From Ginglymostoma cirratum (Eukaryota): DNA of 35,928 nucleotides. The notes under the pieces are model-generated. The model made no database searches. It had not been told where the DNA came from and was given only the letters and a program-made list of their open reading frames with translations. The number at the start of each line of letters is the position of its first letter. Position 1 is the first letter of the stretch. This document shows positions 9,338 to 35,928 of this stretch, one piece after another. The position numbers and the translations under genes were made by a program. The DNA lies in assembly GCA_024137785.1 (NCBI GenBank), contig JAHRHZ010000027.1:1-35928 (forward strand). Direction: 5' to 3'.

Positions 9338-9739
9338 ATTCACATTCCTCTTTGACCATGATTCTATTTGAGTATTTAATGGACGGGGCCCAAACTGAGT
9401 GTGTGTTCATTGAGGAGAAGCCATTCACACAGAGCATGCTGCAGGCAGAAACATTTTTATGAACAAAGTAATTTTGAATGAAATCTACATTAAAACCTTG
9501 ACATTATGGTTTAAGAAAACTCTCAGAATGTTCATTTCAATTCAAATTAATTTGTATATTAATGTTTTGGAAGAAATTTAAATTTGTTGTTGAATGAAGT
9601 GTGGATTTGCTGCTTTGTGAATGCAGTGCGCTGAGAAACATATTCATTTCCTTTAAAACCTTACCTTTTCAGAACGTTTTCAAATAAGACAAGTTGCATT
9701 TCTATATTAGTTTAAAGATGTAAAACCAGAGCAGTAATG

Positions 9740-9945
9740 TGAATAACCTTAAGTTGATGTTCGGTGGATGATTTAAGGCCAGCTGGGATGGTATGGGAAT
9801 GGCTGAGTGTGGAGCTAACAACATGTTGGATGAGGGCTCTGTTGGACAGGGAGATGGATGGAGTCATTGACTAAGGAAAAGTGATTGTTGTGGGATCAAA
9901 GACAGTGGCTTCAATCTTCAGAATTGTCAGTTGTAATTTTATTGA
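9740..9945 (-). mobile_element. Possible L2 LINE RT fragment
   Basis: KLQLTILKIEATVFDP resembles the L2 motif LQLNxxKTEAIVFGP. Confidence 0.4.
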
Positions 9946-10550
9946 CATTGTGAAAATGCACAGACAGGCACAAGAACAGCAGGTAGGTATGTCAGAGGCA
10001 GTTGTTAAACTGGATCAAAGGATGGAGGAATCAACCAACGCTATCAGTCCCAGGCGGTGTGTCTGGCCATCCCCCTTGGAGAGGTGGACAGCTGTCACTC
10101 AGACTCAGGCTCAGCTCACTGAGTGTCTGCTGGATATGAGCACACACCGACATTCCATCACTGTAGCCATTGGTGCTTAGCATAACTGAGGAGGTGAGAG
10201 TGGGTCATCACTATCGACTTCACTCCAGGTTCCCCTTACTCTCAGGGAGACAGGATGGTGTCAGGAGGCACCCATAGAGAGGATGAGCCTCACAGAAGAT
10301 CCCTCGATGTTTCCTCTCAGGACACTCCAGTTAAATCTGGCCTCTCCATCTCCTCCCTGACTGTGATGCCAAGCCATTGCAGAAGTTCCAGTCAGTGACA
10401 GTGAGCCCAAATATGGCTCCCACCCCATTTCAGCTGCATCTGGGACATCCCACTCCCACCCCCTCCAACAACCTTTGTCAACTGCAGCTATGAGGGCCAC
10501 AGCAGCCATACTGACGGCAGAGACATTCTGGGCAAAGCTGCAAGGTCACG
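9945..10550 (+). mobile_element. Possible remnant of the Harbinger second (Myb/SANT-protein) ORF, C-terminal part
   Basis: Coiled-coil-like MHRQAQEQQVGMSEAVVKLDQRMEES then S/P-rich sequence, convergent with the transposase; no Myb domain seen. Confidence 0.35.
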
Positions 10551-10554
10551 CTGA

Positions 10555-11140
10555 AGCGTTCTAGGCACCAAAACCTCATCTTAACGAGGCCTATGGTCTG
10601 TTCCACTTTGGCCCTGGTGGAAGCAGGAGCAGCATTGTATCTTCATTGTGTATCAGTCAATGGGTTTGATAAAGATGTCACTGGCCGAGTTTCAAGAGGG
10701 CTCTCCTTGTCTCCCAGCAGCCATCCCTGTACGTCCTGAGGACATTGGGAAGAAGCAGGACCCAGTGATCTCTCGAATATCTGAGCATCGTGGGAGCTCC
10801 CAGGATATCAATGACCCACCTCCAAAACCTGGCATCGAAGGTCACATCCAAAGTGAGCTTTGATGTAGGTGGAGACTTTTCTGTTGCCGAGCTCTGCAAG
10901 TTAGTGATGGGGACATTCTAACAGCAATGTGGGTGCAGTTTATCGCATGCTGCCCCTGGGGGAAGCCAGTGACGTTGGAACATTCCCCTTCCTGGACTGA
11001 GTGACTCACCGTGTCACAGCTCAGGGAAACATATGAGCAGCTGTGATCTGGAGAAAATGGCAGCAGTGACAGCTTGACTGCATTTGTGTGTCAGAGAGTG
11101 GGAGGTGCCACGCAGCTGCCCAGTTGGTCCTTGAACTCTT
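10555..11140 (-). mobile_element. Fossil PIF/Harbinger DDE transposase (HARBI1-like), frameshifted
   Basis: Ordered motifs across frames: GTSHSLTHKCSQAVTAAIF..FP, GFPQGQHAINCTHIAV, NRK, YPGSSHDAQIF, GWLLGDKESPL, RYNAAPASTRAKVEQTIGLVKMRFWCL. Confidence 0.88.
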
Positions 11141-11754
11141 GTCCATGTGATAACGCCATGAGAATGTCCGAGGTGTATAACCTCATCCAAATGTAATCTG
11201 CACAACCAAAGACATCGAGTTTCATTTTGGGTGCATAATTCTGGCAATAAGCCACTGTGATAGACACCCGCCTCCCAAAGAAAAGTCTCCCTTGCACATT
11301 GCAGACTATCTCCTCTCAGACCTACAATTCAGTGTGTGAACGTGGCGGCTGAGAATTGCATTTTGTTACTGATAGCTATGCAGTGCTTTACAGAAATGCC
11401 AAACTCAAGTGGTACTATAAAATGAGCCTGTCTGATTACATTCGCCTTGTTAACAAGACACTGAATGTGAATAATGTTGTGGTCAATGATTGCTTGAGAC
11501 CATAACGTGTAATGCTTATTTCTGGACAATGAATGACCTGCCGTTGTAGTGGAATTGAATGGTAGTTGTGTGACTGAATCAGTGGATGCAGGGTGGATGC
11601 AATAGCCCCGACTGGGTTTCAAATTCATAGGATTTCACGGTCTCCCTCCACCTCCTCCCAAAATATGAATCAATGACTTCACACCACTCTGCAAGTGACT
11701 CTTGTACAGTGAGTGGGACAAACTTTGTCAAGTGTCAAACTAGTGATTTTGTGC

Positions 11755-11900
11755 CATAATGAAAAATTACTAGAAACTGAGCAGGTCTGGCAGCCTCTGT
11801 GGAAAGAAAGCAGAGTTAATGTTTGAGCTCCAGTGACCCTTCTTCAGAACTATCAGTAGCTGGGAAAGGGTGGTCTATATGCTGCAGACACGGGACTGGG
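11755..11900 (-). mobile_element. Penelope-like element pLTR fragment
   Basis: agcaggtctggcagc...gacccttcttcagaa; minus strand CTGAAGA-AGGGTC...CAAAC is a degenerate hammerhead core. Confidence 0.6.
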
Positions 11901-12499
11901 GTGTTTGTGTGAGTTACCAGCAGACTCGATCTGTGATCCAGAATGATCCTTCTTCCACTCTTTTGTGTTGCTGTCCCTGTGGACCCAATGATCTTCTACC
12001 GTCTCACTGTTTCTGTTCATTCACTTTCTGTAACCATTATGCCCCTAATTTACCATCAGAGCACATGTGTTTGAGAATTGCAGAGCCCTTATTGACCCGA
12101 AGCCCACACCATGTAAGTAATAGTGACTTGGGAAAGCCTCACCTCCTGTTGCTCTCTGGCACTTCCTATGTTCAATGAGAGCCCCCCGAAAGGGTGATCT
12201 TTATGTGGTATTTCCTCTTTGGACCAGGCCAGAATCAGGTTTCTTCACTTAAATATTTATTAATGCTTGCGTGGAAGCTGGACATAAGTAAATATGGTGA
12301 ACAAATCACATCTTTAAAATGGCAATAAGGATTTTCTCAGATTTGTATAGATAACAAGCTTTCATACAATGATTTCTCTAAATAATAGCATGCAGTCAAA
12401 CTGTTAGACATTACCTCGCCTGTATCTCTATTCTACAGTATTCGCATGCTATACATTCCAGATTATTACACATGACTTTAGTATCCAATCCAATTAAAA

Positions 12500-12850
12500 C
12501 GAGGGCATGCACAGGCTGAATAGCCAGGTTCTTTTTCCTGGATTTGGGAGTCCACAACTAACGGGCAGAGGTTAAAGTTGAAAGGGAAAATATTTAAAAA
12601 TGGCCTGAGGAGTAAGTTTTTCACACAGAGGGTAGTGCGATTATGGAATGAGCTGCAAGAGGATGTGGTGGAGGCTTGTCCAATTATGACATTTAAGAGG
12701 CATCAGGATGGATATATGAACAGGAAAGGTTTAGAGGTATGTGGGACAAATGCTGGCAAATGTGACCAGGTCAGATTGGGATATCGGATCGGTGTTGCGG
12801 GGGAAGTTGGGCTGAAGGATCTAATTCTGCGTTTTATGACTGTCTGACTC
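12500..12850 (+). mobile_element. CR1 LINE 3' end
   Basis: FFTQRVVRLWNELQEDVVEA...TFKRHQD. Confidence 0.9.
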
Positions 12851-14429
12851 GATGGACATGATTATATTACCCAATCATATAATGTACATCCTGTCATATA
12901 TTGTTAGATATTCACATCTTCCAGCTGGAAGTACATCTTCTGACAGTAGATATGTAATTGTGATGACCAGAAATCTTACTCTGTCTATTTTTCCCTTTTA
13001 ATACCCTTTTATCTTGAACTGCCTTTACTCACTGTCATCATTCTCTCAGTGACACAGTCCAATCAAGCCTATCCCAGACTTGATTTGATCATTTCCCTCA
13101 GGCTCCCATCGACTTGCCCCTGATAATTCCGCAAAACATTCCTGATCAAACCATCACTGACTACCAACCCAATGTGGACTGACTCAGCAGGAGAGTTCCA
13201 AATGAAAGTGGCCCAGTGCACGGACTCATATCTCCTAGCTCCCAGAATGAGCTCTCTGTAATTCCTGGGCTGGATACCCTTGCATGATGGGACTGAGTGA
13301 GGCCCAATGCCTGGAACACAAGGACCCAGATCCCCAGAGTCTGGTGAGAGCAGGCACTGACTGACCATGGACTGGAATTGAAAGAGAGCCTGAATTGATT
13401 GTGGCATCAGCCCTGGATTCCACATAGTCCCCAGTCACCCCACTCGGCACTGCTCTCCTTTCACTTTCAGACATGGCAATTTCACTGAAGCACATTACTG
13501 TATTTGCCACATGAGATACTGGCCAGTGATATCAGAGTGACACTGACATGGTATGGTGCCATACAGTGAGATGCTCACTCCCTTCCCTGCTCAGTGCCTC
13601 CCACTGTGACAAGCTGCCAGCTTTGAACTCTGTGGTACAATGCAATGCAGCTCACAGAGTCTGGCAGGCTGCAGTTTACAAAGCCAGAGTTCTGTGTTTA
13701 AAAGCAATGTAAAGCACTGAGGCTGGCAGCCTGCAAACAAGTGTCCCCGAGCTCCAAATTCAAGTGGGTGTGACAGCTGGAGCGAGAGCAGGTCTGATTC
13801 TGTAGGGAAGGCTGATCGTTTGCTCCTGATGACTTGAGTGGATAAAGAGTGGAGGAGGGTTGTCTCCAGGGAGCGTGCAGGGATGTTGTGGTGACAACAG
13901 ATGAAGTCTGGGTGAGGTTTGGAACAAGCAATCAGCGAGTAGTATCTGCCAGTTAGATGCTGTGATTAACACATTGGGAATTTGCACTGTGTATTTCCTG
14001 GGTGGAAGAGAACAATTGGAAATGGTGAAAAAGTGGCGAGAGTTGGGCTAATAATGAGGCACAAATACATGGAAATAAGATGGTCACAACTCATTCGTGA
14101 GATTCTCAACATGCCATTTATACACCTACGCAGAAAATTGGAAAATCTTTTCTTGATGAGAAGTTCTGATTCTTTCATGATTGCCATATTTTCCCAATTT
14201 CTTGCAATTTCCCTGATTGTTCCAGGGAGGGAAAAATTCCACCCACTTTCCTCTTTCCCTGTGATAGTCTCCCATTCTCCTTAAAAAATATACGTTGATC
14301 TATCCCGTATAAAAGTGAAACACATCATGGGAGTCTCTGTTTCCAGTGAATGAATAATCCAAGTTACTTCTTTGTTATAGAAAGGGGCTTCTCTTGACAG
14401 ACATCATGACAAAACAAAATAAGAAGTTT

Positions 14430-14714
14430 TAATGAGCAGTGTTACATTCCACAGACAAATATCAATCAAATGTAAACACTTAACTTTGTGATTACAGTGA
14501 TCATTTCAGGTTTTTGTTCGTTTTCAACTACAATAATTCAAAATCATCTTATGACAAGATCTCTTTTCCCACACAGAATTGATGAAACCAATATCCGATG
14601 TGAGATAGTTAAGAAATATTTTATCAAGATGCAAACTTCCAGCCAATGCTGCAGTAGCAGAGAATCTTCACTTTCCCAATTGGTCGAGCTGAGAGCATCA
14701 GATTCAATGAGGAA
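14430..14714 (-). other. Probable non-coding terminal (3'UTR) exon, unit 2
   Basis: Strong acceptor ctgatgtttctttccag at 14715, conserved in unit 3 (29615); an indel between paralogs argues against coding; 3' end uncertain. Confidence 0.45.
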
Positions 14715-14989: not shown

Positions 14990-15890
14990 TGAAGACATAA
15001 GACATTGGAACAAAACTATGCCATTCAGCCCATCGTGTCTGCTCTGCCATTCAACTGGATTATGGCTGATCTCATAATCCTCAACATCACTTTCCTGCCT
15101 TTTCCCATAACTCTTGATTCACTGACTGATTAAAAACCTGTCTATCTCAGCCTTGAGTGTAAGCAATGGCAGAGCCTCATCAACCGTCTTTGGCAACTAA
15201 TTCTACAGGTTCACAGCATCTCAGCGATAAAAACAAATTCTCCTCATCTCAAACTTAACCATATGTATCATCGATGATGATATGCTTTCGTCCACGTCTC
15301 AACCACAAGTGGAAACATCTAATCTGCATTTACCCCATCATGTCCTGGAAACAGCTTGGATGTTTCATTTAGCTAACTTCTCATTCTTCTCGATTCCAAT
15401 GAGGACAGGAGCAATCCTACTCAACCTCTCCTCATAAAATAGTCCCTCCATTCCTGGGATCAGCCTACCGTTTAGCCTTGATTCTACCAGAAGAAACAAA
15501 AGGATTTAGGATGGTCTTTACAATACCATTTTACAGTGCCTTTGAAAAATGGATACAGAGACTTCTGAAGCAGGACCAGAGGAGAGTATTCAGCCCCTGA
15601 AGGCTCCTTCAGCATTCACCTGGATCCTGCCAGATCTTCCACCTGAATGCCATTTTTGTGTAGCATTATTCCCATGTCTCTCGATATCTCTATTACCCAG
15701 AAATTTATTGCTCTCCGTTTGGAGTATACTCAAGGCTGGAACCTACACAGCTCTCTGGGGCAGAGAATTCCAAGTATTCCTATCTTCTGAGTGAAAATTC
15801 CTGCTTATCTCAGTCTCAATTGGCCAACCCACTCTTCTCAAACTGTCTCCTGCTTCAGAAACATCTCCATCCAGGAACATCTCAGTGATG
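14990..15890 (-). mobile_element. Two old CR1-like 3' fragments (about 14990-15440 and 15550-15890)
   Basis: ccattcagccc stem tails and WNSLPQRAV; paralogous to 29870-30530. Confidence 0.7.
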
Positions 15891-15939
15891 GAGAACTTAG
15901 AGTGCTCAGAATTAAACTTGTAAAGACCATGATACTCAC

Positions 15940-16030
15940 CTAATGTTTTCTCATATACACTGTTACAGAAACAGAGCAAATCACCAGGAGAGTGAAGAAC
16001 ACCCAGCAGATTACATTCCAGACACCGTAA
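15940..16030 (-). CDS. Transmembrane + short tail exon, unit 2: (S)YGVWNVICWVFFTLLVICSVSVTVYMRKH*
   Basis: Acceptor catttttctcag (phase 2), about 23-aa hydrophobic run then basic RKH, TAG immediately followed by gtgagt; paralog at 30689-30590. Confidence 0.82.
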
Positions 16031-19000
16031 CTGAGAAAAATGTAAGAAATACAAAATCATTTGACGAAAATGAGTCTGCTTTATGTTTTAACCATTTATC
16101 CACGATTTAAACTGCAACCTGAGTATATTGTAGCAAAGTAAAGTAGCGCAGCTCAGGGAGTTCACTGGGGAAACGGAACTACATTTTAATTCATGAATGA
16201 CATGAACAAATAGGTAAAGGTCAAATGAAACAAGTTTCAGTAGCATGTCCTGTAATGCTCAGGGCAAAGTTATACGTGAGGGTTATAAGTTTTAATGGTT
16301 GGACATTTGCAGGAGGCACTGCAGCCTGGTGTGATATTACAACAGTGAGAGGTCTATTCAGTGAGTGAGAAACTCAGAATAGCATCATCCCACAGTGGTC
16401 CTTGCACTTTCTTACAGGCAAAGCTTAACCAGCTGGAACCAGGCAGCCTTTCACCCTCTCAGTTTGTAACTCTGCGGATGTGAGAAAGAGAAGATGACAG
16501 AGAATGTAGTGACCCTGTCGTGATACAGCAGAATGCCCTGGGTTATCAAAAGTTGCCATTTCTTTACTTTGAAAACTACAACAGCCTGAGCTGAGATGAA
16601 TAATAAAACATCTAATTTTATTTAATTGTATGTGTTATGCCTCGAATGGACAATGTCATCACTTCAGGGTGTGTGCTAAAACTAAGGTATTCTTTTACAT
16701 CCAGTGGAACACTTCCATCAGCCTGTCATGCTTGAAGTGACCCAAACTGAGATGGAGTCTGACACCATTATCCCCTCAGGTCACATGCTCTGACACAGTG
16801 ACGAATTTGTCTATTCAAGGCATAACACCTACAAGCTGTGAGATGTAACACAAAACTGGAGTGCAACATTTGTGCATTCTCTGGAGCTTTATTACACTTG
16901 CATTCATTTTCAAAAATGATTCATTGAATTTTTCAAAATTGTCCAAATATCAAAGTGACGTAATGTGATGAGGTGCAGTTGTTCATGTGACTAAAGAAAC
17001 GAAACCAATGAACATTTTGAATTGTCATGAAACGAATGAATGAACGTCAGAGTCTGTATAAAACTTATCGATGCTGCTGATTTATGTCATCTCAGTACAG
17101 CTTCTCTCTGCTCCCCTGGCAACTGACACATCCAATTTCACTGGATTTTTCTCCCTGAGTATTGGAAGCTGTGCAGTAATATTGATGATGTTGCTGTTTG
17201 AAGGATTGACAACGTAGATCCAGTTTATTGGTGTCAAAGATCTTTGAATCTTGAGATGGGGTCTTCTCAAACCATGTGTAGTGAATGGGGAGGGATCCAT
17301 GGGCAGACTCACAGGAGATTGTCACTGAGCCCCCAGAACATGAGATAATTGGTTGTGATTAAAATCAAATTCGAGGAACAGAGATATTTTCTTTGCGAGG
17401 AAACAATTATTGCAAAACTGACTCCAAGTGAAAAATTGAAAATCCCTGAATACTTCTACCTACACTCTCCCATCTCATGAAGTAAGGTGATAGAGCACAG
17501 AAATAGACAATTTGGCATGGCCAATCCACCGAACCTACACATCTTTGGGCTGTGGGATTAAAACCAGAGCACACAGAGGAAACCAACACACACAAGGGGA
17601 GAATGTGCAAACTGCATACACTCAATTACCCGAGTGTGGAATCGAACACATGTCCCTGGCACTGTGAGCCACCAGGCTGCTGATAAAATATGGCCTAAAA
17701 TAAAATTTATAGTCTTACAATGCTTTTTCTGTCACAGAATATTATCTGGTTAAAAACAAATGAATTACACGTTCTGGAGACCGGAATAAAAAACAGAAGT
17801 TGTGAGAATGATATGATCAGACTGATTTGTTTAGTTTCAGATGTGGACTAGAATTGTGAAGAATTCTGCACTGATCTACTTCTGCACAAATGTGGACTAA
17901 ATCGCTGTGCATTTCCAATATTCTCTGTTCGTCACTGGCACTTAATTGGCATTTTCTCTTCATCACCTTTGTAAGTTTAAAGAATTATTTACTCAGTGTT
18001 TATATCACATTTACAGTTCCGGCTGCTTATTTCCGACAGCTCAGGCGAGTAAGTTGATGCAAAAGGCTAACGCTGAAAGCTCCCTGTCACTGTGCAGATA
18101 TATCACCTCAAATATTACTTTTCACCAGCAGGAATGAAACTATCCTGAAATGTCACTCCAGAACACATAGCCGCAAGGTAGGTTTGGCAAGCACAGTACA
18201 TCACACACCATGTAGTTTAATGGTGAAGTGATGAAGATGAGCAATGCAATCTGAAGGCCAACAAAATAGAAACAATATTCTCCATTTGTACTTTTCAAAT
18301 ACAATTGGACCTTCAAAGTGAAACTAACACAACAGCCTGACATAAACCCAGCACCATTTTCATTTACAAAATAACAAATGACTTTCACTCGTTTGGTCAA
18401 AATTGTTGAACAATATTGTTAATCTCGCACATGGAATCAAAACAAAGACTATCCGACCTTTCAGAGGTTTTGTCTTCTGAGGTTTGAGTTTGACTGGGAG
18501 AAGAAATTCGATTTGTATTTGGGGAATGTGTATTTGTCAGTGATTTTGGTGAAAAAATGTCACAAATATATCCTTGTCCTGTTGAAACAAGGAAATGATG
18601 TTTGGATTCACCTCAGTTTCACTTGTAATTATCCAAGAGGACGTCATGAACAAATGGAGGCTCATTACCTGTAGAAAAGCCTGTGTGATAGCGTTATTTC
18701 CCCTTCTCTGGTCACAATGACACCTATAAATGACTGAGTTCGACTGATAATTTTATAGAGTCATTGAGTTATACAGCGCGGAAACAGACCCTTTGGTTCA
18801 ACACGTCCATGTTGACTAAGTTTCTCAAACTAAACTATTCCCACTAGTCTGCATTTGGCCCATATCCTTCCAAACCTTTCCTTTTCATCAACAGATTCAA
18901 ATATCTTTTAAGTATTGTAACTGTCCATTCATTAACTATGTCCCGTCCACATATGAACTAACATCTGTGTGAGTAGTTGCCTCTCAGGTCCCTTTTAAAT

Positions 19001-22000
19001 CTTTCTTCTCTCATGTTAAAAATATTCCCTCTCATTTGAACTCTCCCACCCTGGGGAAAAAGACATTTCCTATTCACCTCATCTATGCCCCTCATGAGTT
19101 TGCAAGCCGTTACTATTTTACACCTCTACTTCCTGCACTCCAGGAGGGGTAATGGCCTCGTGGTATTATTGATGGATTGTTAATCCAGAGACTCAGATTA
19201 TGATGTGGGGAGCAGGGTTCAAATCCCACCAGGGCAGGTAGAGGAATTTGAATTCATTAAATATCTGGAATTACGAATCCAATTATGACCCTGAATCCAT
19301 TGTCGATTGTCGGGACAATCCCATCTGGTTCACTAATGTCCTTCAGGGAAGGGAACTGCCATCCTTACCTGTTCTGGCCTCCATGTGGCTCCAGACCCAC
19401 AGCAATGTGTTTGCCTTGAAACTGCCCTTTGGGCATTAAATGCTGCCTAGCTAGCCACACCCTCACCCCGTGAATGAATTATAAAAAAACTTGAGAGAAA
19501 AAAGTCCCAGCCTTTCTTGCCTGTTCTTATAACTCAAACCCTCCAGTTCTGGCAACATCCTGGTAAATCTCTTCTGAACACGCTCCAATATAATAATAAC
19601 CTTCCAATAGCAGGGTGACTAGAACTGTACACAGTACAACAAAAGTGGCCTCACCAAAATCCTGTGCAAGTTCAACATGACGTTCCAACTTCTGTACTCA
19701 AATGGTCTGAGCAATGAAGGCAAAAATGCGAAATGCCTTCTCAACTACCGTGTCGACTTGTGATGCAAATTTTAAAGAATTATCAACCTGAACCTCTAGA
19801 TCTCCCTGTTCAACAACACGACCCAGGGCTCTACCATGAATTGTATAAGTCCTGCCCTTCTCTGTCTCACCAAAATGCAATACCACGTATTTATCAAAAT
19901 TAAACATTATCGGCCACTGCTCAGCTCATTGGCCCAATTGATCAAGATCCCTTTATAATCTTAGATAATCTTCTTAATTGTCGACTTTACCACCAATTTT
20001 GGTGTCATCTGAAAACTTTCTAACAATGCCGATGAAATTCTTATCCAAATCGTTCATATAAATTATACTGATCCATGTGCAACTTCACTGGTCACAGGCC
20101 TCCAGTGCAAAAACCAACCCTCCAGCACCACACTCTGTCTCCTGCTGTCAAGCCAATTTTGTTCCATTTGGCAAGATCACCCTCAATCCCATGAGATTTA
20201 ACTTTACTAATTCGTCTACAATGAGGAACCTTGTTACTAAAGTCCATGTAGACAACATCTACTGCTCTGTCCTCTTCAATCTTTTTGGTTTCATTCTCAA
20301 AAAACTCAAACAAGTTTGTAAGGCAGACTGTGCACACACAAAGCCATGCTGATTAACCCTAAACAGTCCTTCCCTCTCCAAGAGCATATAAATCCTATCC
20401 CCCAGAATCCCCTCCAACAACTTACTTAACACTGATGTCAGGCTCACAGGCCTATAGTTCCCAGGCTTCCCATTAGAGCCTTGCTTAAATAAAGGCACAA
20501 CATTAGCCAACCTCCAGTCCTCAGTCACTGCACCCGTGACTGTGGATGATACAAATATCTCTGCTAGGGATCCCTTAATTCCTTCACTAAATTCCCACAA
20601 TATCCTAGGACATGCTTAATCAGGTCCCACCGATTTATCCACCTTTGTGTTTTTTAAGACCTCCAGCACTTCCTCTTCTCTAATGTGGACTATTATTAAG
20701 CCATCAATATTTATACACCTGAGTCCCCCAGCATCTATGTGTTTCTAGAACATAGAACATAGAACTGTACAGCACAGTACAGGGCCTTCGGCCCACAATG
20801 TTGTGTCAAACTTTTACCCGAAACCTAAGGTCTATCTAGCCTCCACCACTACCTTATACCATCATCCATATGCCAATCTAATAGCCACTTAACTGCCCCT
20901 AATGAGGCCGACTCCACTACCCTCTCTGGCAATGCATTCCATGCCCCAACCACTCTCTGAGTAAAGAGCCTACCTCTGATGTCTCCCCTCTCTCTACCTC
21001 CACTCACTTTAAAACTATGCCCCCTTGTAATAGCTACCTCCACCCTTGTAAAAAGTCTCTGGCTATCCACTCTTTCTATACTTCTGATTATTCTATACAC
21101 CTCGATCAAGTCACCTCTCATCCTTCGTCATTCCAAAGAGAAAAGCCCTACCTCTCTCAACCTATCCTCGTAAGACCTTCCCTCCATTCCAGGCAACATC
21201 CCGGTAAATTTCCTCTGCACCTTTTCCAATACTTCCACATCTTTCCTGAAATGAGGCAACCAGAACTGGACACAATACTCCAGATGTGGCTGAACCAGGC
21301 TTTTGTACAGCTGGAGCATAACTTCACGGCTCTTGAAATCAATCCCTCTATTAATGAAAGCTAACACACCATACGTCTTCTTAACAACTCTATCCACCTG
21401 CGTGGCAGCTTTCATGGAAGTGTGGACATGAACCCCAAGATCCCTCTGTTCCTCCACACCGCCGAAAATCTTTCCGTTAACCCCGTATTCTGCTTTCAAA
21501 CTTGTCCTTCCAAAATGAATCACCTCACAATTTTCAGGGTTAAACTCCATCTGCCATTTCTCAGCCCAGCTCTGCATCCTATCAATGCCCCTTTGTAACC
21601 TAGAACAGCCCTCCGCACTATTTACAATTCGACCCACCATCGTGTCATCCGTGAACTTACTATTCCACCCGACCACTCCTACATCCAAATCATTTACAAA
21701 AATCACAAGTAGAAGAGGACTCAGAACAGATCCTTGTTGTATACCACTCGTAACTGAGCACCATGTTGAATATTTTCTGTCCATTACCTCCCTTTATCTT
21801 CTAAGTGTCAGCCAATTCTGAATCCAATCTGCCAGATTTCCCCTATCCCATGCCTCCTTACTTTCTGCATGAGCCTACCATGGGGAATCTTCCCAAACGA
21901 CTTACTTAAATCCATGTATTCCACATCCACTGCTCTACCTCCATCCACCTGTTTGGTCACCTCTTCAAAGAATTCAAACGTTTTGTGAGGCATGATCTAC

Positions 22001-25000
22001 CCCTCACAAATCCATGCTGACTATCATGGATCAAACTATGCCTTTCCAAGTGATCATAAATCCTGTTTCTCAGAGCTCTTTCCAATAATTTGCCCATCAC
22101 TGAAGTAAGGCTAACTGGCCTGTAATTTCCGGGGTTATCCTTGTTCCCTTTTTTGAACACGGGAATGACGTTTGCCTCTCTCCAATCTTCCAGCACTATA
22201 CTCGTGGACAATGAGGATGAAAAGATCATCACCAAAGGCCCTGCGCTCTCTTCCCTCGCTTCCCATAGAATCCTTGGATAAATCCAATCAGCCCCGGGGG
22301 ACTTATCGTTCTTCAATTTCCTCAAAGTTTCTTGTACGTCTTCTTTACTAACATCCACCTCCTCTAGCCTATCAGCCTGTCTCACATTGTTCTCCCCGAT
22401 AGCGAGGTCCTTCTCAGCTGTGAATACCAAAGAAAAGTATCCATTAAGGACCTCTCCGATCTCTTCAGGCTCTGTGCACAAATTCCCTTTACAATCCTTG
22501 ATCGGACCTGCTTTACTCTGGTCATTCTCTTATTCCTCACGTACTTGTACAAAGCCTTGGAGTTTTCCTTGATCCGATCTGCCGATGTTTCCTCATGCCC
22601 CCTGATGGCTCTCCTGAGCTCTTTCTTCAGCTCCTTTCTGGATAACTTGTATCTCTTTCAAGCCTTTTCTGTTCCTTGTTTCCAAAGCCTCACTGAAGCA
22701 TCCTACTTTCTCTTAACTTTCTCATTTGACCTCACTTGAGAACCAAGGCTCCCTCACTCGACCGCATCTTCCCTGCCTGCTTGGGACAAACATATCGAGT
22801 ACATGCAGTATGCATTTTTTGAACAATCTCCACATTTCTATCGTGTTCTTCGCTGACAGCATCTGTTCCCATTTTATGTTACCCAGTTCTTGCCTAATAG
22901 AATTATAATTTCCCTTCCACCGATTATAAACCTCACCCTGCTGTATGTACCTATCCTTTTCCACGACTATTGTAAAAGTAACAGAGATATGCTCACTTAC
23001 GCCAAAATGCTCCCACCAGCAGGTCTGACACTTGGCCCGTTTCATTGCCAAGCACTCCACAGTAAAAACTGATATGAAAGTTTGGATCAGTATCTCTCCC
23101 ACATTCTGTGGTTCCACACATGGACAATCTTGTTGACTTCCTTTCCCAAATCTGAGAGTTGATGTCTAACATCTGGGTTTGTTAAAGGGTTTGGGCTGGT
23201 AACTTCAACGCAGTTATCCCACTTGTTTAAAACCACGAGTTTCACATGGAGCTGTCGTTTGCTGATATTGGCTGTGGTCAATTCCACCCTCTTCGTGTCA
23301 GTTTTCTGAGCTCTCAGGAATGAGGAGAAACACCCCACAGACACATAACCTGCCAGTGATTTCCCATTGTATCGGAGATAATAGGAACTGCAGATGCTGG
23401 AGAATCCGAGATAACAAGGTGTCGAGCTGGATGAACACAGCTGGCCAAGCAGCATCACAGGAGCTCCTGATCCCATGATGCTGCTTGGTCTGCTGTGTTT
23501 ATCCAGCTCTACACCTTGTTATCAGTGATTTCCCATTGGCTGAACTGTAAGTATCCAGGAGGCAGACACATGAGGTGCCCCATCTCCATGGAGTACATAG
23601 ACAACATGGCTGAGGTGTATTTTAAGTGAACCATTTCTGCAAGAACTAAATTGTTAAATTTTTATTGTTTATTCTTTGTTGGACAGTGTTTGCTGCCCAT
23701 TCTGAATTACCTCTGACTGATTGGCTTTCAGGGCTTTTGAAGAGGGCAGTTAAGAATCAAGCACATTGCTGGAGTCACATATAGACCAGAGCTGGAAAGG
23801 GCTGCATGTTTCCTTCCCTAAAGGACATTAATGAACCAAATAGTGCCTTCCAGGATTTTAGGAGGCCCCAAAATGACTCACATTCGATGAAGTGCTCAGT
23901 TGAAACAAGCAAACCGTTGTAATGCAGCAAGATGTAGAAGTTAATTTAAATGCAGTGAAAAGCATTGAAGTAATTCTGTCAAAAATCTGGTTGTTTTTAT
24001 CAATTGAGGAATGAATTCTTCCTTTGATATCAGGAAAACCTCCATTCTGCAAAGAGTTTACAAATGACGCCATACCCAAACGGTGAACAGGTTCTCAGTT
24101 TATCACCTCATCGATGCTGTCTCAGCTGCAAGAGGACAGCATTCCCTCTCTCTGCTGGGCTGTGGTATCCAGCTGAATTTTAACCCCAAAGGGGAACTTG
24201 AACACACAGCATGTTTGTGATAAATGTTAGAGTGCAGCCACATGAGCCGCTGCTGATAGTTACAAATACAGTTTATGTGTGTCATTGTTCCTTGATGCTG
24301 ACCAGATTCTCTCTGACAGCTCAAACACGAGATCATATCAGGAAATGCCTGCAGTCAATACTTGCATATGTTTCATATTTACAACTCATCTCCAACCTAT
24401 ACCCAATATCTGCCCAAAATCTGGACATAATAGTCACTTCCCGAATTTGATAATTTGATCTGGTAGACAAATTCAAATTGTCCGTCAATCAAACGTTTTT
24501 TAATTTTCGGGGATTATTGGAGTTATTACAATGCTCATGCATGCTGTGGGTAATATCTTACGTACCTGCTCATTTTTGAAGAACAAAGCAAACCGTTGGT
24601 TTTGTTCAGAACTGGCGATGAAACAAATGGAGTGCGTTTTATCAATTACAGTCTTACAGAATGTGATAAAATGCAACCAGTTGCAATACACTTTCAATAA
24701 AAAAGAAATCATATTGTTTGCTTCACACTCACCGATGCTGTCGATGTATATTGTATACCAACAGTTCTTCTCTGTTACATTGTTGACTGACACATGAACA
24801 ATTTCACTGGATTTTGTTCCCTGAGTATTTGAGGCTGCGCAGTAATATTGATGATGTTGCTGTGTGAGGGATTGACAATTTAGATCCAGTTTATTGGTGT
24901 CAGAGATCTTTGAATCTTGAGATGGGGACTTCTCAGACCATGTGTAGTGAATGGGGAGGGATCCCTGGGCAGACTCACAGGAGATTGTCACTGAGTCCCC

Positions 25001-27859
25001 AGAACATGAGACATTTGGTTGTGACAAAAATCGAAGTTGAGGAGCAGAGACAGCTTCTGTGGGAAAGAAACAATTGTTGAGAAATCGACTGCCACCGAAA
25101 AATCAAATACTCTCCAACACTTTGTTATCTTGTTTCTTGGATAAAGCATTGATCAGACATATCAGCAGAAATAAAAATTGAAATAATATCAGTGAGACAT
25201 ATGTACCTTCTGAGATGTGCAGCTTTACATTAAACATTGGGTCAGTGGCAATGCCAGGTTTGTCAATCCCACAGCTGTACCATCCTGCATCTCCCCATTG
25301 AAGATTCTTCATTGTAACAAGAATTATTCCTTGTGTTTTGTTATCAGTGATGGATATTCTCCCATTTGGCCAGTTTGTTGTTGCTATAACATGACACTGA
25401 TGAGTCCATCCGCGACACCAATATTTAATGTGTGACTGGTACCACCCTGCTTCGTAGTGGCAATGTATTGTGATTGCTCTTCCCAAAATTCCCGTAACGT
25501 ATTTCTCTGCCCATAAAGCACCTGAAACTGAGGAGAAAATATTTCAGAGATTTGGAAATTTCTAAAGAAGTGCTTAACATGGATGGATACATTGTAATCA
25601 TTGACATTCTATCTAGTTTGATTGAAAGAGTCGGACCCAATGGGTCAAGTTTTGGGGCAGCCTTGAAATTGGGCTTGTGCTAAACAATGTCGGCTCTAAG
25701 TCCACTGTGTGTGGCACCATCGAAGTGTAACTCCTGAAGAGCAGTCTGAATGACAGGCCTGGATTGGAGTCGGCTGGGGATTAGTGTGAAGGAGGCTACA
25801 GGTGCTGAAGGGTTCTTATTCTGACCGGAGAGGGAGAGTTTCAATCGGGGAGGAGAGGGGAGTATGTCGACTCATGGTGTGCTGAGGGGCTGAATTTCCA
25901 GGTCTTGAGGGGAAGATGCAACAGGTGACACAGGAAGATTATGAGAGGCCGCAAGGAGTTAAAGGAGAGATTTGAAGTTCAGCAAGGGATGGTTCACAAA
26001 TGTGAAGCTCAATCACAGATGGCACAGTGGCTCAGTGGTTTGCACTGATGCCTCACAGTGCCAGGGACCCTGTTCCTTTTCCAATCTCGAGCAACCGTGT
26101 GTGAAGTTTGCACGTTCTCCTTGTGTCTGCGTGGGTTACCATTGGATGCTCCTGTGTCCGCCCACAGTCGAAAGATGTGCAAGTTCAGTGGATTGGCCAT
26201 GCTAATTTGCCCATAATGTTTTGGGATGAGTAGGTTATGTTCATTAGTCACGGGAAATACAGGGCTACTGGGATGGGGTAGGGGAATGGGTCTGGGGGGC
26301 GTGGGGATGCTGCTCAGAGGGTTGTTGTTGAGCTGTTGGGCCGAATGGCAAGTTTCCACACTGTGGGGATTCTATGATCTATGGTCAATATGCAGAAGCT
26401 TAGGACAGTAAAGGCAGGATTAATTGTAATCACACATTGCTCTCAGTGTAAGGATAGTAAAATAACAGAAGGAATTTACTGATTTTTCTGGAGAGACACT
26501 TCATGAGAAAATGTTTAAATTGCAGCCATATTGTGTCCTGGTGTGGAAGAGGGGCAGCCTGTTGATGATTGGGTAAACTTTACCTCAAAAGATATGATTG
26601 TGTGGGAAACAATTCTCAACCGAAACGAAAGAAAGGATTTTAAAATAAAATGAAGTGGTTGAGAGGAAAGGAGAAAGGGAGAAACTGCATGAACAATTAA
26701 AGCTGATGGAAGTCACGAATGAGAGTTCTTATTGAAAAAGGAAGTCTTGAAGAGGATTGCTGAACACACAGAGGCACACTTCGGTTTTCTGTCTGTAAAG
26801 TATTCTGCATGAAATTGGTGAGCTTGAGCCTCAATCTGTTGCAGAAAGATTTCCTGTAACATTTCACTGAGCTGCGGCCCTGGGAACTTTAATACTTTGC
26901 GTGTTCATCTCTGCTTCATTATAAACGAAGGGGAAGTGGCAATATTGAACAATAATGTTATTGCAATGTTACAATTACAATTGTGATAATTGATGGACAT
27001 GAAAGAACTTTGTTCAAGTTAAAGACAGAAAGGAAAAAGCCTTCTTATGGGAAGAGAAATATAAACAAACCATCGACTTTTGTGCCAGAGTCTCGCAAAC
27101 AACATTTAATGAACGTTCTATTACAGGAAAAGAAAGGAAAGCAAACCCAAGATGTTTAGATTGACAGCTTACTACCTCACCAGTTTTCAGTGTATATTGA
27201 ACATTTAAAACTTTGGACCAGTTCAACTGATGATGCTGTTTGAATCACTTTAAAAAACATCATGCTGTCCTTTTCTTTATTTTATTCATAATTAATGATG
27301 CAGCTGTAAAGTATTTGGTAACAGTCTTGTGATATTATCATATTTTCAGAAGAAGATATAACATTTCCTGATGCTCTTCATGTATTTTTACATTTTTTCA
27401 TTTGAACCTCAGTCAAAGCACACGGTGCTTCTGTTTTCTGCAGTTTGTTCTTCCTGGAACAGGTCACCAGCGTCAGACCAGTTTGTGTAATTTAAGGGGT
27501 GTCACACTGCGCTGGATAAAGCTGACTTGGAATCTCATTCACGCTTGCTCCCTGCCATGGGCACGTTGGAAGAATTTGCAGGTTGATGATGAACCTGTTT
27601 ATCTTTGTGAGAATGCACATTCCTTTGGAAAGTGTGCTGGAGAATAAATCGAACTCTCAGCATTTATCACAGCAATAAAGATGTTACCTGCTGTGTCAAC
27701 AAGATGTTCCTTTGTGCTTTTACATGTGTCCAAATATGTAAACATCTCTATACTGTATAAACCAGACAGTAGACTTTAATAAACATTAATTATTGGAATA
27801 AACATCTCAGATGGTCACTCACCGGGAATGGAACAAATGAGGGGAATCAAAGTCCACAT
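15940..27859 (-). CDS. Spliced gene model (unit 2): CD300/pIgR-like V + C2 Ig receptor (MDIR-like), 297 aa; exons 27859-27823, 25527-25207, 25056-24733, 18578-18458, 16030-15940
   Basis: Five exons with AG/GT boundaries and compatible phases (1,1,1,2) sum to 37+321+324+121+91=894 nt, an open frame from ATG to TAG: signal peptide, V, C2, S/T-rich stalk, TM, MRKH*. Exon joining is inferred; no transcript evidence is available. Confidence 0.7.
17069..17390 (-). pseudogene. Dead second C2 exon (C2b), unit 2
   Basis: Paralog of C2a; in-frame TGA 17367-17365 and TAA 17361-17359, 2-nt deletion near 17133, TAA 17084-17082, donor mutated to ataagt. Confidence 0.9.
17506..17680 (-). mobile_element. 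HE1-type V-SINE 5' part
   Basis: Reverse complement of the V-domain (catggccaatccacc...gagaatgtgcaaact). Confidence 0.8.
18140..18225 (-). pseudogene. Possible decayed transmembrane exon (TM1) downstream of stalk 1
   Basis: NYMVCDVLCL aligns codon-wise with SYIVWNIMCW/YGVWNVICW of the intact TM exons; after a frameshift LAAMCSGVTF resembles LVICSVSVTV; no usable phase-2 acceptor found. Confidence 0.4.
18458..18578 (-). CDS. Stalk exon 1 (Ser/Thr/Pro-rich, one Cys), intact: GQGYICDIFSPKSLTNTHSPNTNRISSPSQTQTSEDKTSE
   Basis: Acceptor ttccttgtttcaacag, donor AAG|gtcgga (weak), 121 nt, phase 1-2; start homologous to stalk 2 (GSEYICE). Absent from the ORF track. Confidence 0.75.
18757..20745 (-). 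mobile_element. Old CR1 LINE (RT to 3' tail), interrupted by a SINE and by a young CR1; resumes at 23056-23115
   Basis: PGNYRPVSLTSV, AVDVVYMDFS, FNFDKYVVLHFG; tail near 18757. Confidence 0.93.
19143..19489 (+). mobile_element. Full-length tRNA-derived SINE distinct from HE1, nested in CR1
   Basis: A box (tggcctcgtgg), B box (gggttcaaatccc), tail gtgaatgaattataaaaaaa; CR1 sequence resumes on both sides. Confidence 0.82.
20746..23055 (-). mobile_element. Young 5'-truncated CR1 LINE nested in old CR1
   Basis: Long ORF2 pieces (KSPGADWIYP, NYRPVSLTS, QGSVLSP, FTDDT) and 3' (TTCTATG)n tail at 20746-20765. Confidence 0.96.
23354..23538. mobile_element. Fold-back Penelope-like pLTR insertion (153 bp) with 16-bp target site duplication
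   Basis: cagtgatttcccattg at 23354-23369 and 23523-23538; inverted arms 23410-23457 / 23476-23523; empty site at 2423-2438. Confidence 0.85.
23680..23845 (-). mobile_element. SINE fragment, paralog of 2580-2750
   Basis: tttccttccctaaaggacattaatgaacc core. Confidence 0.7.
24733..25056 (-). CDS. C2-type Ig domain exon (C2a), intact, FcR/LITR-like
   Basis: Acceptor tttctttcccacag, donor G|gtgagt, 324 nt, phase 1-1; EAVSAPQL...GDSVTISCESAQGSLPIHYTW...QYYCAASN...SSEIVHVSV...KNCWYTIYIDSI. Confidence 0.9.
25207..25527 (-). CDS. V-type Ig domain exon, CD300/pIgR/TREM-like, intact
   Basis: Acceptor ttttctcctcag, donor G|gtacat, 321 nt, phase 1-1. Translation ...GRAITIHCHY...KYWCRGWTHQC...RISITDN...MKNLQWGDAGWYSCG has the canonical Cys/Trp, DxGxYxC, and the extra C-C' Cys pair typical of CD300/pIgR. 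Confidence 0.92.
26017..26378 (+). mobile_element. HE1-type V-SINE, paralogous insertion to 4983-5325
   Basis: ggcacagtggctcagtggtttgcactgatgcctcacagtgccagggacc head, V-domain, same flanks. Confidence 0.9.
27823..27859 (-). CDS. Leader (signal peptide) exon, unit 2: MWTLIPLICSIP
   Basis: ATG + 12 codons + 1 nt, followed by gtgagt donor (phase 1); continues into VSGALWAE of the V exon; paralogous exon at 6828-6792. Confidence 0.85.
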
Positions 27860-30589: not shown

Positions 30590-30689
30590 CTAATGTTTTC
30601 TCATATACACTGTGACAGAAACAGAACAAATCACCAGGAGAGTGAAGAGCACCCAGCACATTATATTCCAGACAATGTAACTGGGCAAA
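30590..30689 (-). pseudogene. Transmembrane exon, unit 3: LPSYIVWNIMCWVLFTLLVICSVSVTVYMRKH*
   Basis: Two phase-2 acceptors 9 nt apart (exon start 30689 or 30680), TAG|gtgatt. The exon itself is intact, but the upstream exons visible here carry stops. Confidence 0.75.
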
Positions 30690-31447
30690 CTGGACAAAAT
30701 ACAAAATCATTTGTAGGAAACAAGTTTCCTTCATGTTTCAAACATTTATCCGCTGTTTACACTACAATCTTAGTTTATTGTAGCCAAATAAAGCTGCACA
30801 GCTCAGAGAGTTAAGTGGGGAAACTGAACTACAGTTTAATTCCTGCATGACATGAACAATAGATAAAGGTGAACTGAAACAAGGTTCAGTAGCATGATGT
30901 ATTGCACATCACAACGTTATGCTCAGAACAGCATCATCCCACAGTGCTCCTTGCACTTTCTAACAGGCAAGTCTGAACCAGCTGGAACCAGACAGCCTTT
31001 CACCCTCTCAGTTTGGGAACAACATGTAACTCTGAGGATCTGAGGAAGAGAAGATGACGGAGAATGTTATGTCCCTGTCAGTGATACTGCAGAATGCCCT
31101 GAGTGTTCAAAAACTGCCATTTCTTTGCTTTGAAAACTACAACACCATGAGCAGAGATCAATAATAAGGCATTTAACTTTAATGGTGAAAACTGCACTCG
31201 AATCTGCGAGGTGACAAACAGAAAATTGTTACTTTCTATCATAGATTTCCAATTTTATGAACAGCAACATTGTCAGGAAGGTAACGGGATAGCATCGTAT
31301 AAAATCAGGCACCATCTCCATTCTGATAAATTATAGCCTGAAATTGGAAATTCTTGAAAACTTTTATGCAAAATGACATGTTATCACTTGGAATCAATGC
31401 TGATGGGAATATCGACAATGAAAAGGTTCTACTTTTTACTGACAGAC

Positions 31448-31529
31448 TTGGATCATAAAGATATTTGTGTTATTGTTGGTGCCGATGTTGGCAATGCCGT
31501 TGAAGAGACTTCACAAATATATTCACTTC
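31448..31529 (-). pseudogene. Stalk exon 2, unit 3, with the same in-frame stop (31455-31453)
   Basis: Lies between C2b and the TM exon; identical to the unit 1 copy. Confidence 0.72.
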
Positions 31530-31709
31530 CTATTGAGGGATCAGATAATATTCGGCTTCACCTGAGTCTCACTTACAGAGAACCAAGAGAGAACTCTTCA
31601 CAAATGGGACCTCAGGGTTTTTTGTGAAGAATAGATTTTGTTGAATTCATTTGTTGACAACTCCCGCTTTCTGGAGAGATGTCGTAGTGACATAACTTCA
31701 ACATAATTT

Positions 31710-32110
31710 AAAGATAACATAGTGTGGAGCTGGTGGAACACAGCAGGCCAGGCAGCATCAGAGGAGCAGGAAAGTTGACATACCGGTTGGGACCCTTCTT
31801 CAGAAATGGTGTGGAGGGGAAAGGGAGCTGGGAAATAAATAGAGAGAGGAGAGGTGGGGCTGGTGAAGATAGGTGGGATGGTGATAGTTGAGTGCAGGTA
31901 GAGAGTGGTGGGGATTGGTCAGTGATGTGGGAGGGGCATATAGGTAGGAGGGAAGATGGACAGGTTTCGTCAAGACAAGGAGGTGGGGATGAGAGGGAGG
32001 ATTGGTCATGGGATGTGGCCGGGGCTGGGGAGATTGGTAAAATCCATATTTAGGCCATTGGGCCGGAGGCTTCTGAGGTGGAATATGAGGTGCTGCTCCT
32101 CCAGTTCCAT
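31710..32110 (-). mobile_element. Penelope-like element 3' end (GIY-YIG C-terminus + pLTR)
   Basis: Minus-strand ELEEQHLIFHLRSLRPNGLNMDF (32107-32039) is the typical PLE endonuclease end, followed by a pyrimidine-rich tract and the pLTR. Confidence 0.87.
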
Positions 32111-32283
32111 CTAGCATCTATTTTCAAAAACAAATCAATGCTTTGCTCAAAATTGTTAAAAAATGAAAGTGACATAATGGGATGAGGTGCAGTTAATCAT
32201 GTGATGAAAGAAGCTGAACAAATGAACAGTTTGAATAGCCATGAAATGAATTAATCAACTTCAGTGTCTGTAAAAAAACTTAC

Positions 32284-32607
32284 TGATGCTACTGGTTCAT
32301 ATCATCTCACTACAGCTTCTCTCTGCTCCCCTGGCAAATGACACATGAACAATTTCACTGGATTTTGTTCCCTGAGTACTTGAGGCTGTGCAGTAATATT
32401 GATGATGTTGCTGTGTGATGGATTGACAATGTAGATTCCATTTATTGGTGTCAGAGATCTTTGAATCTTGAGATGGGGCCTTCTCAGACGATGTGTAGTG
32501 AATGGGGAGGGATTCCCGGGCAGATTCACACGACATTGTCACTGAGTCCCCAGAACATGAGATAATTGGTTGTGATTAAAATTAAAATTCAGGAACAGAG
32601 ACATTTT
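32284..32607 (-). pseudogene. Dead C2b exon, unit 3
   Basis: 324 nt; TAA 32584-32582, TAA 32578-32576, TGA 32299-32297; core Trp changed to Ser (HYTS); donor gtaagt intact. Confidence 0.9.
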
Positions 32608-33542: not shown

Positions 33543-35928
33543 AGGATTTGTGATCCCAGGGATGAGGTATTCAGACTTCCAACAGACACAACAGGGAGTG
33601 AGGTTGTTAATAAAGAAATGCAGTCGATGGAGCGTAATTGTGGACACAGGGATGGTTTGAAGTGTGTATACTTCAACGATAGAAGTATCAGAAATAAGGC
33701 GGATGAACTTACAGCATGGGTCAGTAATTGGAGCAACAAAGTTGTGGCCATGACAGAAACTTGGGTAACTCAGGGACAGGAATGGTTGTTGGAAGTTCTG
33801 GAATTTAGATGCTTTAAAAGAAATAGGGAGGATGGTAAAAGAGGCAGCAGAGTGGCATTGCTAGTCAGGGCCAGTACAGGCGCTACTGAAAGGCAGTTTG
33901 AGAATGGTATGTCGACAGAGTCAGTTTGGGTTGAGATCAGGAACAAGAAAGGATCAGTCACTTTGCTGGGGTATTTTTTTACAGACCCTCTAATAGTTGC
34001 AGAGAAGTGGAGTTGCAGATTAGGAAGCAGATACTGGAAAGGTGCAGAAGTCGGAGGGTTGTAGTGATGGGAGACTTCAACTTTCCAAATATTGATTGGA
34101 AACTTTTTAGTTGTCATAGTTCAGATGGAACAGATTTTGTCCAGTGCATTCAGGAAGGATTCCTGACACAGTAAGTAAATAGACCAACGTGAGGAGAAGC
34201 CACTGTGGATTTTGTGTTTGGCAATGAACCAGCCACGTGTTAGACCTGTTGGTGGGAGCATTTTGGTGGTAGTGATTATAACTCTGTTACTTTTACAATA
34301 GTCATGGAAAAGGATAGGTACATACAGCAGGGTAAGGTTTAGAACTGGGGGAAGGGTAATTATAATTCTGTTAGGCAAGAACAGGGTAGCATAAATTGGG
34401 AACAGATGCTGTCACGGAAGGGCACTATAGAAATGTGCAGATTGTTTAAGGAATGCATACTGCATGTGATTGATATATTTGTCCCTAGCAGGCAGGGAAG
34501 GTGTGGTCGAGTGAGGGAGGCTTGGTTCTTGAGAGAAGTCGAACGACTAGTTAAGAGGAAGAAGGATGCTTATATAAGGTTTCGGAAACAAGGATCAGAA
34601 AAGGCTCTAGAGAGATACAAGTTAGCCAGGAAGGAGATGAAGAAAGGGCTTAGGAGCGCTATAGCAAGAGAAAAACTCGGCAGATGGATCAAGGAAAACT
34701 CCAAGGCTTTTTACACGTACGTGAGAAATAAGAGAATGACCAGAGAAATGGTAGGGCCAATCAAGGATTGTAAAGGGAATTTGTGCACAGAGCCTGAAGA
34801 GATAGGAGAGGTTCTTAATGGATACTTTTCTTCGGTATTCACAACTGAGTGGGACCTAGCTGTAGGGGAGGACAGTGTGAAAAAGGCTGGAAGTCTAGAG
34901 GAGGTGGATGTTAGTAAGGACGATGTACTAGGAATTTTGAGGAACTTGAAGATAGATAAGTCTCCCGGGCCTGATGGGATTTATCCAAGGATTCCTTGAG
35001 AAGCGAGGGAAGAGATTGCAGGGCCTTTGGCGATAAACTTTTCATCCTCACTGTCCACGAGTATAGTGCCGGAAGATTGGAGAGAGGTAAATGTCGTTCC
35101 CTTGTTCAAAAAAAGTGAATAGGAACAACCCCGGAAATTATAGGCCAGATAGTCTTACTTCAGTGGTGGGCAAATTATTGGAAAGGGCTATGAGAAATAG
35201 GATTTATGATCACTTGGATAGGCTCAGTTTGATTCGTGACAGACAGCATGGATTTGTGAGGGGTAGTTTATGACCACTAAACCTTATTGAATTCTTTGAC
35301 GAGGTGACCAAACACGTGGATGAATGTAGAGCAGCGGGGGTCGTATACATGGATTTGAGTAAGGTGTTTGATAAGGTTCCCCATGGTAGGCTCATGGAGA
35401 AAGTAAGGAGGCATGGGATAGGGGGAAATGTGGCAGATTGGATTCAGAATTGGCTGACCCTTAGAAGACAAAAGGTGGTGGTGGACGGAAAATATTCAAC
35501 ATGGTACTTAGTTACAAGTGGTTTATCACAGGGATCTGTGCTGGGTCCTCTTCTATTTGTGATTTTTGTAAATGATTTGGATGTAGGAGTGGAAGGGTGG
35601 ATTAGTGTGTTCGCGGACAATACGAAGGTGGGTTGAGCTGTGGATAGTGCGGAGGGCTGTTCTAGGTTACAAAGGGACATTGATAGGATGCAGAGCTGGG
35701 CTGAGAAGTGGCAGATGGAGTTTAACCCTGAAAAGTGTGAGGTGATTCATTTTGGAAGGACTGATTTGAAAGCAGGATACAGTGTTAACAGAAAGATTCT
35801 TGGCAGTGTGGAGGAGCAGAGGGATCTTGGGGTTCATGTCCACAGTTCCCTGAAAGCTGCCACCCAGGTGGATAGAGTTGTTGAGAAGGCATATGATGTG
35901 TTAGTTTTTATTAATAGAAGGATTGAGT
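33543..35928 (+). mobile_element. Young CR1 LINE (endonuclease + RT, disrupted), runs off the window
   Basis: LKCVYFNDRSIRNK..MTETW (APE), KSPGPDGIYP, YMDLSKVFDKVPH, QGSVLGP, FADNT; same subfamily as 20746-23055. Confidence 0.96.

Follow-up and report, generated by a model that had tools for sequence, protein, structure and literature searches.

A putatively live or recently silenced V-C2-stalk receptor gene with a degenerate anchor half in an MDIR-type array of the shark Ginglymostoma cirratum

Can a gene for an immune receptor stay alive in an array of decayed copies when the exon for its membrane anchor lies beyond a dead one? This question is raised by a stretch of 35,928 nucleotides (nt) of contig JAHRHZ010000027.1 of the shark Ginglymostoma cirratum, which contains no N and was analysed as a whole (hereafter the window). 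A preliminary description of the window had joined a leader, a V, a C2, a stalk and a transmembrane (TM) exon into one frame and had proposed that it encodes a functional membrane receptor of 297 amino acids. The window comprises three tandem head-to-tail units of a shark MDIR-type gene on the minus strand (Table 1), referred to as the upstream, middle and downstream unit. In the middle unit, the leader, the V exon, the first C2 exon (C2a) and the stalk exon (stalkA) are intact and represent the counterpart of the whale-shark protein 'CMRF35-like molecule 8'. With a probability of about 0.5, we read this unit as a probably live or recently silenced V-C2-stalk gene with a degenerate anchor half. 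Considered separately, the part from the leader to stalkA is rather likely to be a live gene, because the neighbouring copies are pseudogenes. The anchor half appears degenerate because the donor of stalkA is weak and the TM exon encodes Cys where all relatives have Arg. The claim of a functional membrane receptor was not supported: besides the weak donor and the TM without Arg, the nearest relative (P0156) is annotated without a TM.

The homology searches were run exon by exon, and the five exons were joined by a script solely for frame arithmetic. The V exon is recognised as a V-set domain by Pfam (E 6e-10) and matches pIgR (PDB, E 3.8e-31), CD300/CLM-1 (E 1e-15) and TREM2 (E 3e-7). It carries the extra cysteine pair (..KYWC..C..) that characterises V-set domains of the CD300/pIgR/TREM type, and its acceptor yields the VSGALWAEK of the family. 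As expected for an MDIR, a C2/I-type immunoglobulin (Ig) domain follows: C2a is matched by the Pfam families Ig_3, Ig_2, ig and Ig_C17orf99 and by FCRL5 in the PDB (E 2.4e-35). A full HMMER scan with C2a returned 892 proteins at E<=0.001, the closest of which are all from sharks or rays. The named relatives are 'CMRF35-like molecule 8', 'polymeric immunoglobulin receptor-like' and 'Fc receptor-like 5' in Rhincodon, Hemiscyllium, Chiloscyllium and many others. The V domains of mammalian pIgR and CD300 match the V of the window and the Ig domains of FCRL5 its C2, but the layouts differ. The CD300 receptors consist of one V without a C2, five V-type domains make up pIgR and the FCRLs have no CD300-type V; the succession of a V and a C2 exon is the arrangement of the MDIRs.

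PMC3031540, in a passage citing Cannon et al. (2006), presents the MDIRs as a multigene family whose members, activating as well as inhibitory receptors, contain CD300-, TREM- and pIgR-like domains. Like the window copy, MDIR2 and MDIR5 of the skate Rostroraja eglanteria belong to a multigene family and combine a CD300/pIgR-type V with subsequent C2 domains. The identity to these two proteins amounts to 49-54% in V (54% for MDIR2) and 58-63% in C2, and to 50% in the TM of MDIR5. The TM of MDIR5 is of the same short-tailed type, with its Arg, but MDIR5 has the order V-C2-V-C2, whereas the window copy is V-C2 without the TM Arg. MDIR2 differs as well: its TM is uncharged and is followed by a long tail whose motifs resemble the immunoreceptor tyrosine-based inhibitory motif (ITIM). 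The window copy fits neither functional class. The uncharged TM together with a long tail bearing an ITIM-like Y-x-x-[VLI], which marks inhibitory-type MDIRs, is not present, and a tblastn search of the window with 221 proteins of the family (P0151, P0024, P0035 and MDIR2 among them) revealed no tail exons. Of the two marks of the activating type, a basic residue in the TM (W-x-V-[IG]-R-W) and a short tail, the copy retains the short tail (RKH), and the Arg is replaced. With a pIgR/CD300-type V, an FCRL-type C2 and relatives that include skate MDIR2 and MDIR5, the earlier assignment to an MDIR-type family was nevertheless confirmed. The comparison with chondrichthyan proteins that had been suggested alongside it yielded exon-wise matches, and hemiscylliid proteins of 276-299 amino acids share the order leader-V-C2-stalk-TM and the stop after RKH.

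The closest protein overall is the whale-shark (Rhincodon typus) 'CMRF35-like molecule 8' (P0156, an NCBI model of 284 amino acids), which shares with the middle unit the order leader-V-C2-stalk and the exon junctions. The identity is 88.7% in V, 87.9% in C2 and 64-68% in the stalk; stalkA aligns to residues 226-284 with 68% identity over 59 amino acids (E 3e-22). The P0156 model has no TM, and its stalk donor is read through to a stop, whereas stalkA of the window can also be joined in frame to a TM exon that lies 2.4 kb farther downstream. The leader, which has A at position -3 of the ATG, is 92% identical to those of P0002, P0152 and P0153. The architecture and length class of the five-exon model are those of Hemiscyllium P0152 (293 amino acids) and P0157 (276 amino acids), Chiloscyllium P0155 (299 amino acids) and both units of P0002. 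The C2 domains of these hemiscylliid relatives are 79-87% identical to C2a, and their TM (SYVVWDVIRWVLFTLLVICSVSVTMFTRKH) follows the pattern SY..W....FTLLVICSVSVT and ends in RKH or QKH before the stop, as the window model does. The differences concern the stalk and the TM. Hemiscylliid stalks (GREYTCD...), which share the start G-x-E-Y-x-C-D, resemble the stalk exon of the neighbouring units (stalkB). Their TMs contain WDVIRW with the invariant Arg where the window has WNVICW. Moreover, the stalk and the TM of the window, unlike those of the hemiscylliid proteins, are derived from two modules separated by a dead C2 exon.

In line with the preliminary description, the coordinates of the five exons and their joined frame were reproduced. 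All acceptors are AG and all donors GT, the junction phases are 1, 1, 1 and 2, and the exons total 894 nt, corresponding to 297 codons and TAG. The frame by itself does not identify the stalk exon. The 8.7 kb that separate C2a from the TM exon contain 511 AG..GT segments of 40-200 nt with a length of 1 mod 3 that keep the required frame open (76 of them behind a pyrimidine-rich acceptor), and of all windows of 40 codons in this sequence 17.5% are free of stops. As arithmetic, the fit of the stalk exon is no better than chance. We consider stalkA a real exon because it is homologous to the stalks of the family, not because the frame fits. Only one of its three frames is open, and this is the frame that aligns to P0156. 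Homology to stalkB of the neighbouring units extends over its first ~35 nt and the flank upstream of it. It encodes a stalk rich in Ser, Thr and Pro between C2 and TM that starts with the G-x-x-Y-x-C-[DE] of the family, here GQGYICD... Furthermore, the codon split across the stalkA/TM junction (AG/T) supplies the Ser of the family motif SY..W.

Is this half of the unit alive? The 894 nt of the middle unit contain no stop and no frameshift, and all cysteines and tryptophans of the Ig folds are kept. The leader, the A of the Kozak context and four of the five splice sites are in good order as well. By comparison, three stops and one frameshift have accumulated in 645 nt of the downstream sister copy; if both lineages were neutral, the probability that all four lesions fall into one of the two is ~0.06. 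These features argue against the notion that the whole middle unit is an unexpressed pseudogene whose frames are open by chance, a notion that we regard as unlikely. It draws on the surrounding pseudogene copies, on the weak donor and the lost Arg and on the abundance of in-frame bridging segments noted above. It also draws on several observations that weigh against a live gene in general. First, sense-oriented sequence of long interspersed nuclear elements (LINEs) lies inside the 6-kb intron between C2a and stalkA, part of which has no counterpart in the downstream copy. Second, dN/dS against the paralogues in the window is 0.7-1.3 and thus close to 1, giving no sign of purifying selection, although the partners are pseudogenes and the ratio is hence uninformative. 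Third, no protein encoded in the window, annotated or transcript-derived, was found among the candidates of 96-429 amino acids in the protein collections. Fourth, a relic would account for the change from Arg to Cys and for the donor GTCGGA no less well than a decoy receptor.

As to RNA, none of the listed sequencing runs contained half of the words of V and C2a, the best shares being 0.26 and 0.21. Positions 15500-19450 were checked in two raw RNA runs and two contig runs from an organism diverged by ~5%; its contigs are collinear with the window at ~95% identity, which points to a related species or else a diverged copy as their source. In these data, ~5 RNA reads cover stalkA and the next 600 nt at similar depth, none of them spliced. 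On stalkA and the TM exon the RNA depth is below about 1, the TM exon being covered by ~1 read with several mismatches, and in reads as sparse and diverged as these none was reported across the 18458>16030 joint.

The TM motif of the family, W-x-[VMI]-x-R-W, contains Arg in 33 of 33 relatives collected from sharks and rays, MDIR5 included, and Cys occupies its place in the TM exon of the middle unit as well as in the upstream copy. By analogy with short-tailed activating receptors, the Arg is the likely contact to a signalling adaptor. Otherwise, the exon is 72-77% identical to family TMs that stop at the same RKH. Between the middle and the upstream unit it is 92% identical, compared with 80-82% in the flanks (Fisher p 0.009), which suggests constraint or gene conversion. 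A second frame of the TM exon runs through the donor behind its stop into an open reading frame (ORF) of 105 amino acids (..YEKTLGEYHGLYKFNSEHSKF.., 15743-16060, minus strand). The same read-through peptide occurs in the Hemiscyllium NCBI models P0002 and P0006, where it is probably a prediction artefact that fuses neighbouring genes.

As to the 3' end of the gene, a membrane and a soluble form are both candidates. The only in-frame path to an anchor leads from stalkA (18458) over the dead second C2 exon (C2b), which has lost its donor, into the TM exon at 16030. This exon belongs to a second, 5'-truncated module, and the resulting protein of 297 amino acids would have exactly the layout of the family. 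It seems rather unlikely that a leader-V-C2a-stalkA-TM mRNA of this kind predominates and gives rise to a functional membrane receptor. All five parts are family exons with compatible phases, the layout and the position of the stop match P0152, P0155 and P0157, the TM exon is conserved above its flanks and has a strong acceptor, and AATAAA is present at 15709, ~230 nt past the stop. On the other hand, this mRNA depends on the donor AAG/GTCGGA of stalkA, and C at +3 and G at +4 are rare in vertebrate donors. A second in-frame donor 27 nt downstream (CAT/GTGCGA, giving an exon of 148 nt) is no better. The Cys for the invariant Arg, the TM-less annotation of P0156 and the lack of junction reads, in the weak data from the diverged organism, likewise speak against this form.

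If the weak donor is not used, stalkA reads through in frame to a stop. A soluble protein of ~288 amino acids is thus a serious alternative to the membrane form, as judged from the sequence, because the tail of P0156 matches this read-through, the frame stays open for 20 codons and ATTAAA follows at 18221-18216, 237 nt downstream of the donor. The last 17 residues of P0156, RYDILCFDSLCEMNNIV, are the translation just past the same AG/GT, and the read-through of the window is identical at 13 of these 17 positions. The exclusive version of this alternative, in which stalkA is an extended terminal exon, the gene secretes V-C2-stalk and a dead neighbouring copy has left the TM exon behind as an unused relic, is conceivable, yet we would not bet on it. 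The loss of the Arg would be in keeping with it, as would the similar depth of the few reads on stalkA and the following sequence. However, the end of the P0156 model may have been extended automatically for want of a TM exon, and the read-through tail shows no more conservation than neutral sequence does. The TM exon, by contrast, is better conserved than its flanks, and the read numbers are tiny and stem from another organism.

In the immunoglobulin mu gene, a weak 5' splice site competes with a poly(A) site in the switch between the membrane and the secreted product. As judged from the sequence, the order of elements in the window would be analogous: the last ectodomain exon ends in a weak donor, a poly(A) signal follows and a TM exon lies farther downstream. 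We therefore also weighed the idea of a live chimeric receptor by exon borrowing. Its ectodomain and stalk would be spliced over the long-dead C2 exon to the TM exon of a decapitated neighbour, with an IgM-like choice between soluble and membrane forms. With the invariant Arg of the family missing from the TM, its membrane form would act as a decoy blind to adaptors. Taken as a whole, this scenario appears improbable. In the preferred reading, a V-C2-stalk gene with a degenerate anchor half, much of the output would probably read through the stalkA donor, or end there, as soluble protein, and the usual pairing with a signalling adaptor would be closed to any membrane form.

Table 1. Features of the middle unit and of its neighbours in the 35,928-nt window; a slash marks the exon border in donor sequences.
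Feature	Position	Length	Strand	Description
Leader exon (MWTLIPLICSIP)	27859-27823	37 nt	minus	phase 1 out; donor CCG/GTGAGT
V exon	25527-25207	321 nt	minus	intact pIgR/CD300-type V-set domain
C2a exon	25056-24733	324 nt	minus	intact FCRL-type Ig domain; donor TCG/GTGAGT
C2a-stalkA intron	18579-24732	6.15 kb (6,154 nt)	minus	packed with sense-oriented LINE fragments; reverse transcriptase ORFs at 20259-23117
StalkA exon (GQGYICDIFSPKS...TSE)	18578-18458	121 nt	minus	phase 1 in, phase 2 out; donor AAG/GTCGGA
StalkA read-through	18397-18457		minus	20 further codons (RSDSLCFDSMCEINNIVQQF), then TGA; TM-less product of ~288 amino acids
SINE-like repeat between stalkA and C2b	17508-17675			further copies at 26045-26209 and 5031-5161; depth of reads and contigs very high in all runs
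Dead C2b exon	17384-17069		minus	two early stops, 2-nt deletion, donor GT changed to AT
TM exon (SYGVWNVICWVFFTLLVICSVSVTVYMRKH-stop)	16030-15940	91 nt	minus	TAG is the final triplet, followed by strong GTGAGT
Upstream unit, 3' half	30590-32603		minus	dead C2 32603-32285; stalkB ~31529-31440 with in-frame TGA; TM 30680-30590 with Cys for Arg
Downstream unit (pseudogene)	1-6828		minus	leader 6828-6792; V 4426-4114 with three stops
Downstream unit, 3' part			minus	C2 3961-3639 with 1-nt deletion; stalkB ~210-121 with TGA

How could the stalk and the anchor of one gene come to lie on either side of a dead exon? Both early stops of C2b are also present in the C2 of the upstream unit (32603-32285); the exon was therefore dead before the units duplicated. 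Since C2b, in addition, has no donor, any transcript must have skipped it since before that duplication, and skipping is the expected behaviour given the lost donor. The stops that the preliminary description had reported in C2b were thus confirmed and supplemented by the change of the donor GT to AT. Likewise, the decayed siblings that it placed on either side were recovered, with lesions in V and C2 downstream and a dead C2 and the TGA in stalkB upstream. Its view that the stalk and the TM come from different modules also stands: stalkA lies within a segment of 1.27 kb (17507-18773) that is absent from the upstream unit, and the TM exon belongs to the module of C2b.

The internal duplication of a C2-stalk-TM module, which had been proposed as well, held up in part. 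The second module has C2b and the TM exon; its own stalk has been lost, as the middle unit is devoid of the stalkB that its neighbours have between the dead C2 and the TM, and no TM remnant of the first module was found. A decayed TM-like exon, which the mRNA was supposed to skip, did not materialise. Against 18457-17480, even the best local alignments of the TM block stay under the mean score of shuffled sequence, and local alignment to 18457-17480, 24732-18579 and 17068-16061 revealed nothing above the shuffled controls except a marginal match of 26 nt at 24661-24636. Only a hydrophobic ORF at 18274-18190 could pass for a TM-like segment. A remnant of a V exon in front of C2b was considered and rejected: the high-scoring segment pairs of tblastn reach ~30 codons upstream of C2b, but at the DNA level this stretch aligns to the intron between V and C2 in the intact copy.

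Several further observations concern the history of the array. The copy of the repeat resembling short interspersed nuclear elements (SINEs) at 17508-17675 is located exactly at the edge of the stalkA-bearing segment that is missing from the upstream unit. The LINE fragments of the C2a-stalkA intron (RVT_1 match, E 2e-8) at 20259-23117 on the minus strand have an inverted copy with 86% identity at 34202-35926 on the plus strand, at the upper end of the window. StalkB of the downstream (115-232) and of the upstream unit (31435-31552) are identical over ~118 nt, the TGA included, in surroundings of ~86% identity, which suggests gene conversion. In addition, the 6.5-kb stretch 7951-14480 between the middle and the downstream unit has no counterpart between the upstream and the middle unit and is richer in GC (0.45-0.49) than the rest of the window.

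C2b also attracts RNA reads. Because all of them carry A>G at 17237, we attribute them to paralogous C2 exons, and they point to cross-mapping from expressed genes. Over 17199-17344, where the contigs match at ~93%, the depth is ~2,000-3,700 in run X9 as compared with ~75-90 in run X10, against a background of ~20 in both. From this contrast, it looks as if a paralogous C2-bearing gene were strongly expressed in the diverged organism, in a tissue-dependent manner. Beyond 17344, the contig continues with ...FSSPPNA..., as in whale-shark P0163.

As it stands, the main gain is one more V-C2 member of the MDIR/'CMRF35-like' family, probably live, along with several pseudogenes; annotations of this family already exist for several shark and ray genomes. 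The sole unusual feature, if the composite were transcribed, would be its borrowed, Arg-less anchor. In that case, a receptor in a fast-turning-over shark immune array would have outlived the loss of its own anchor by means of an exon of a dead neighbour. A family of the activating type would then be making soluble or non-signalling variants, which would bear on the origin of paired and decoy receptors in the oldest jawed vertebrates.

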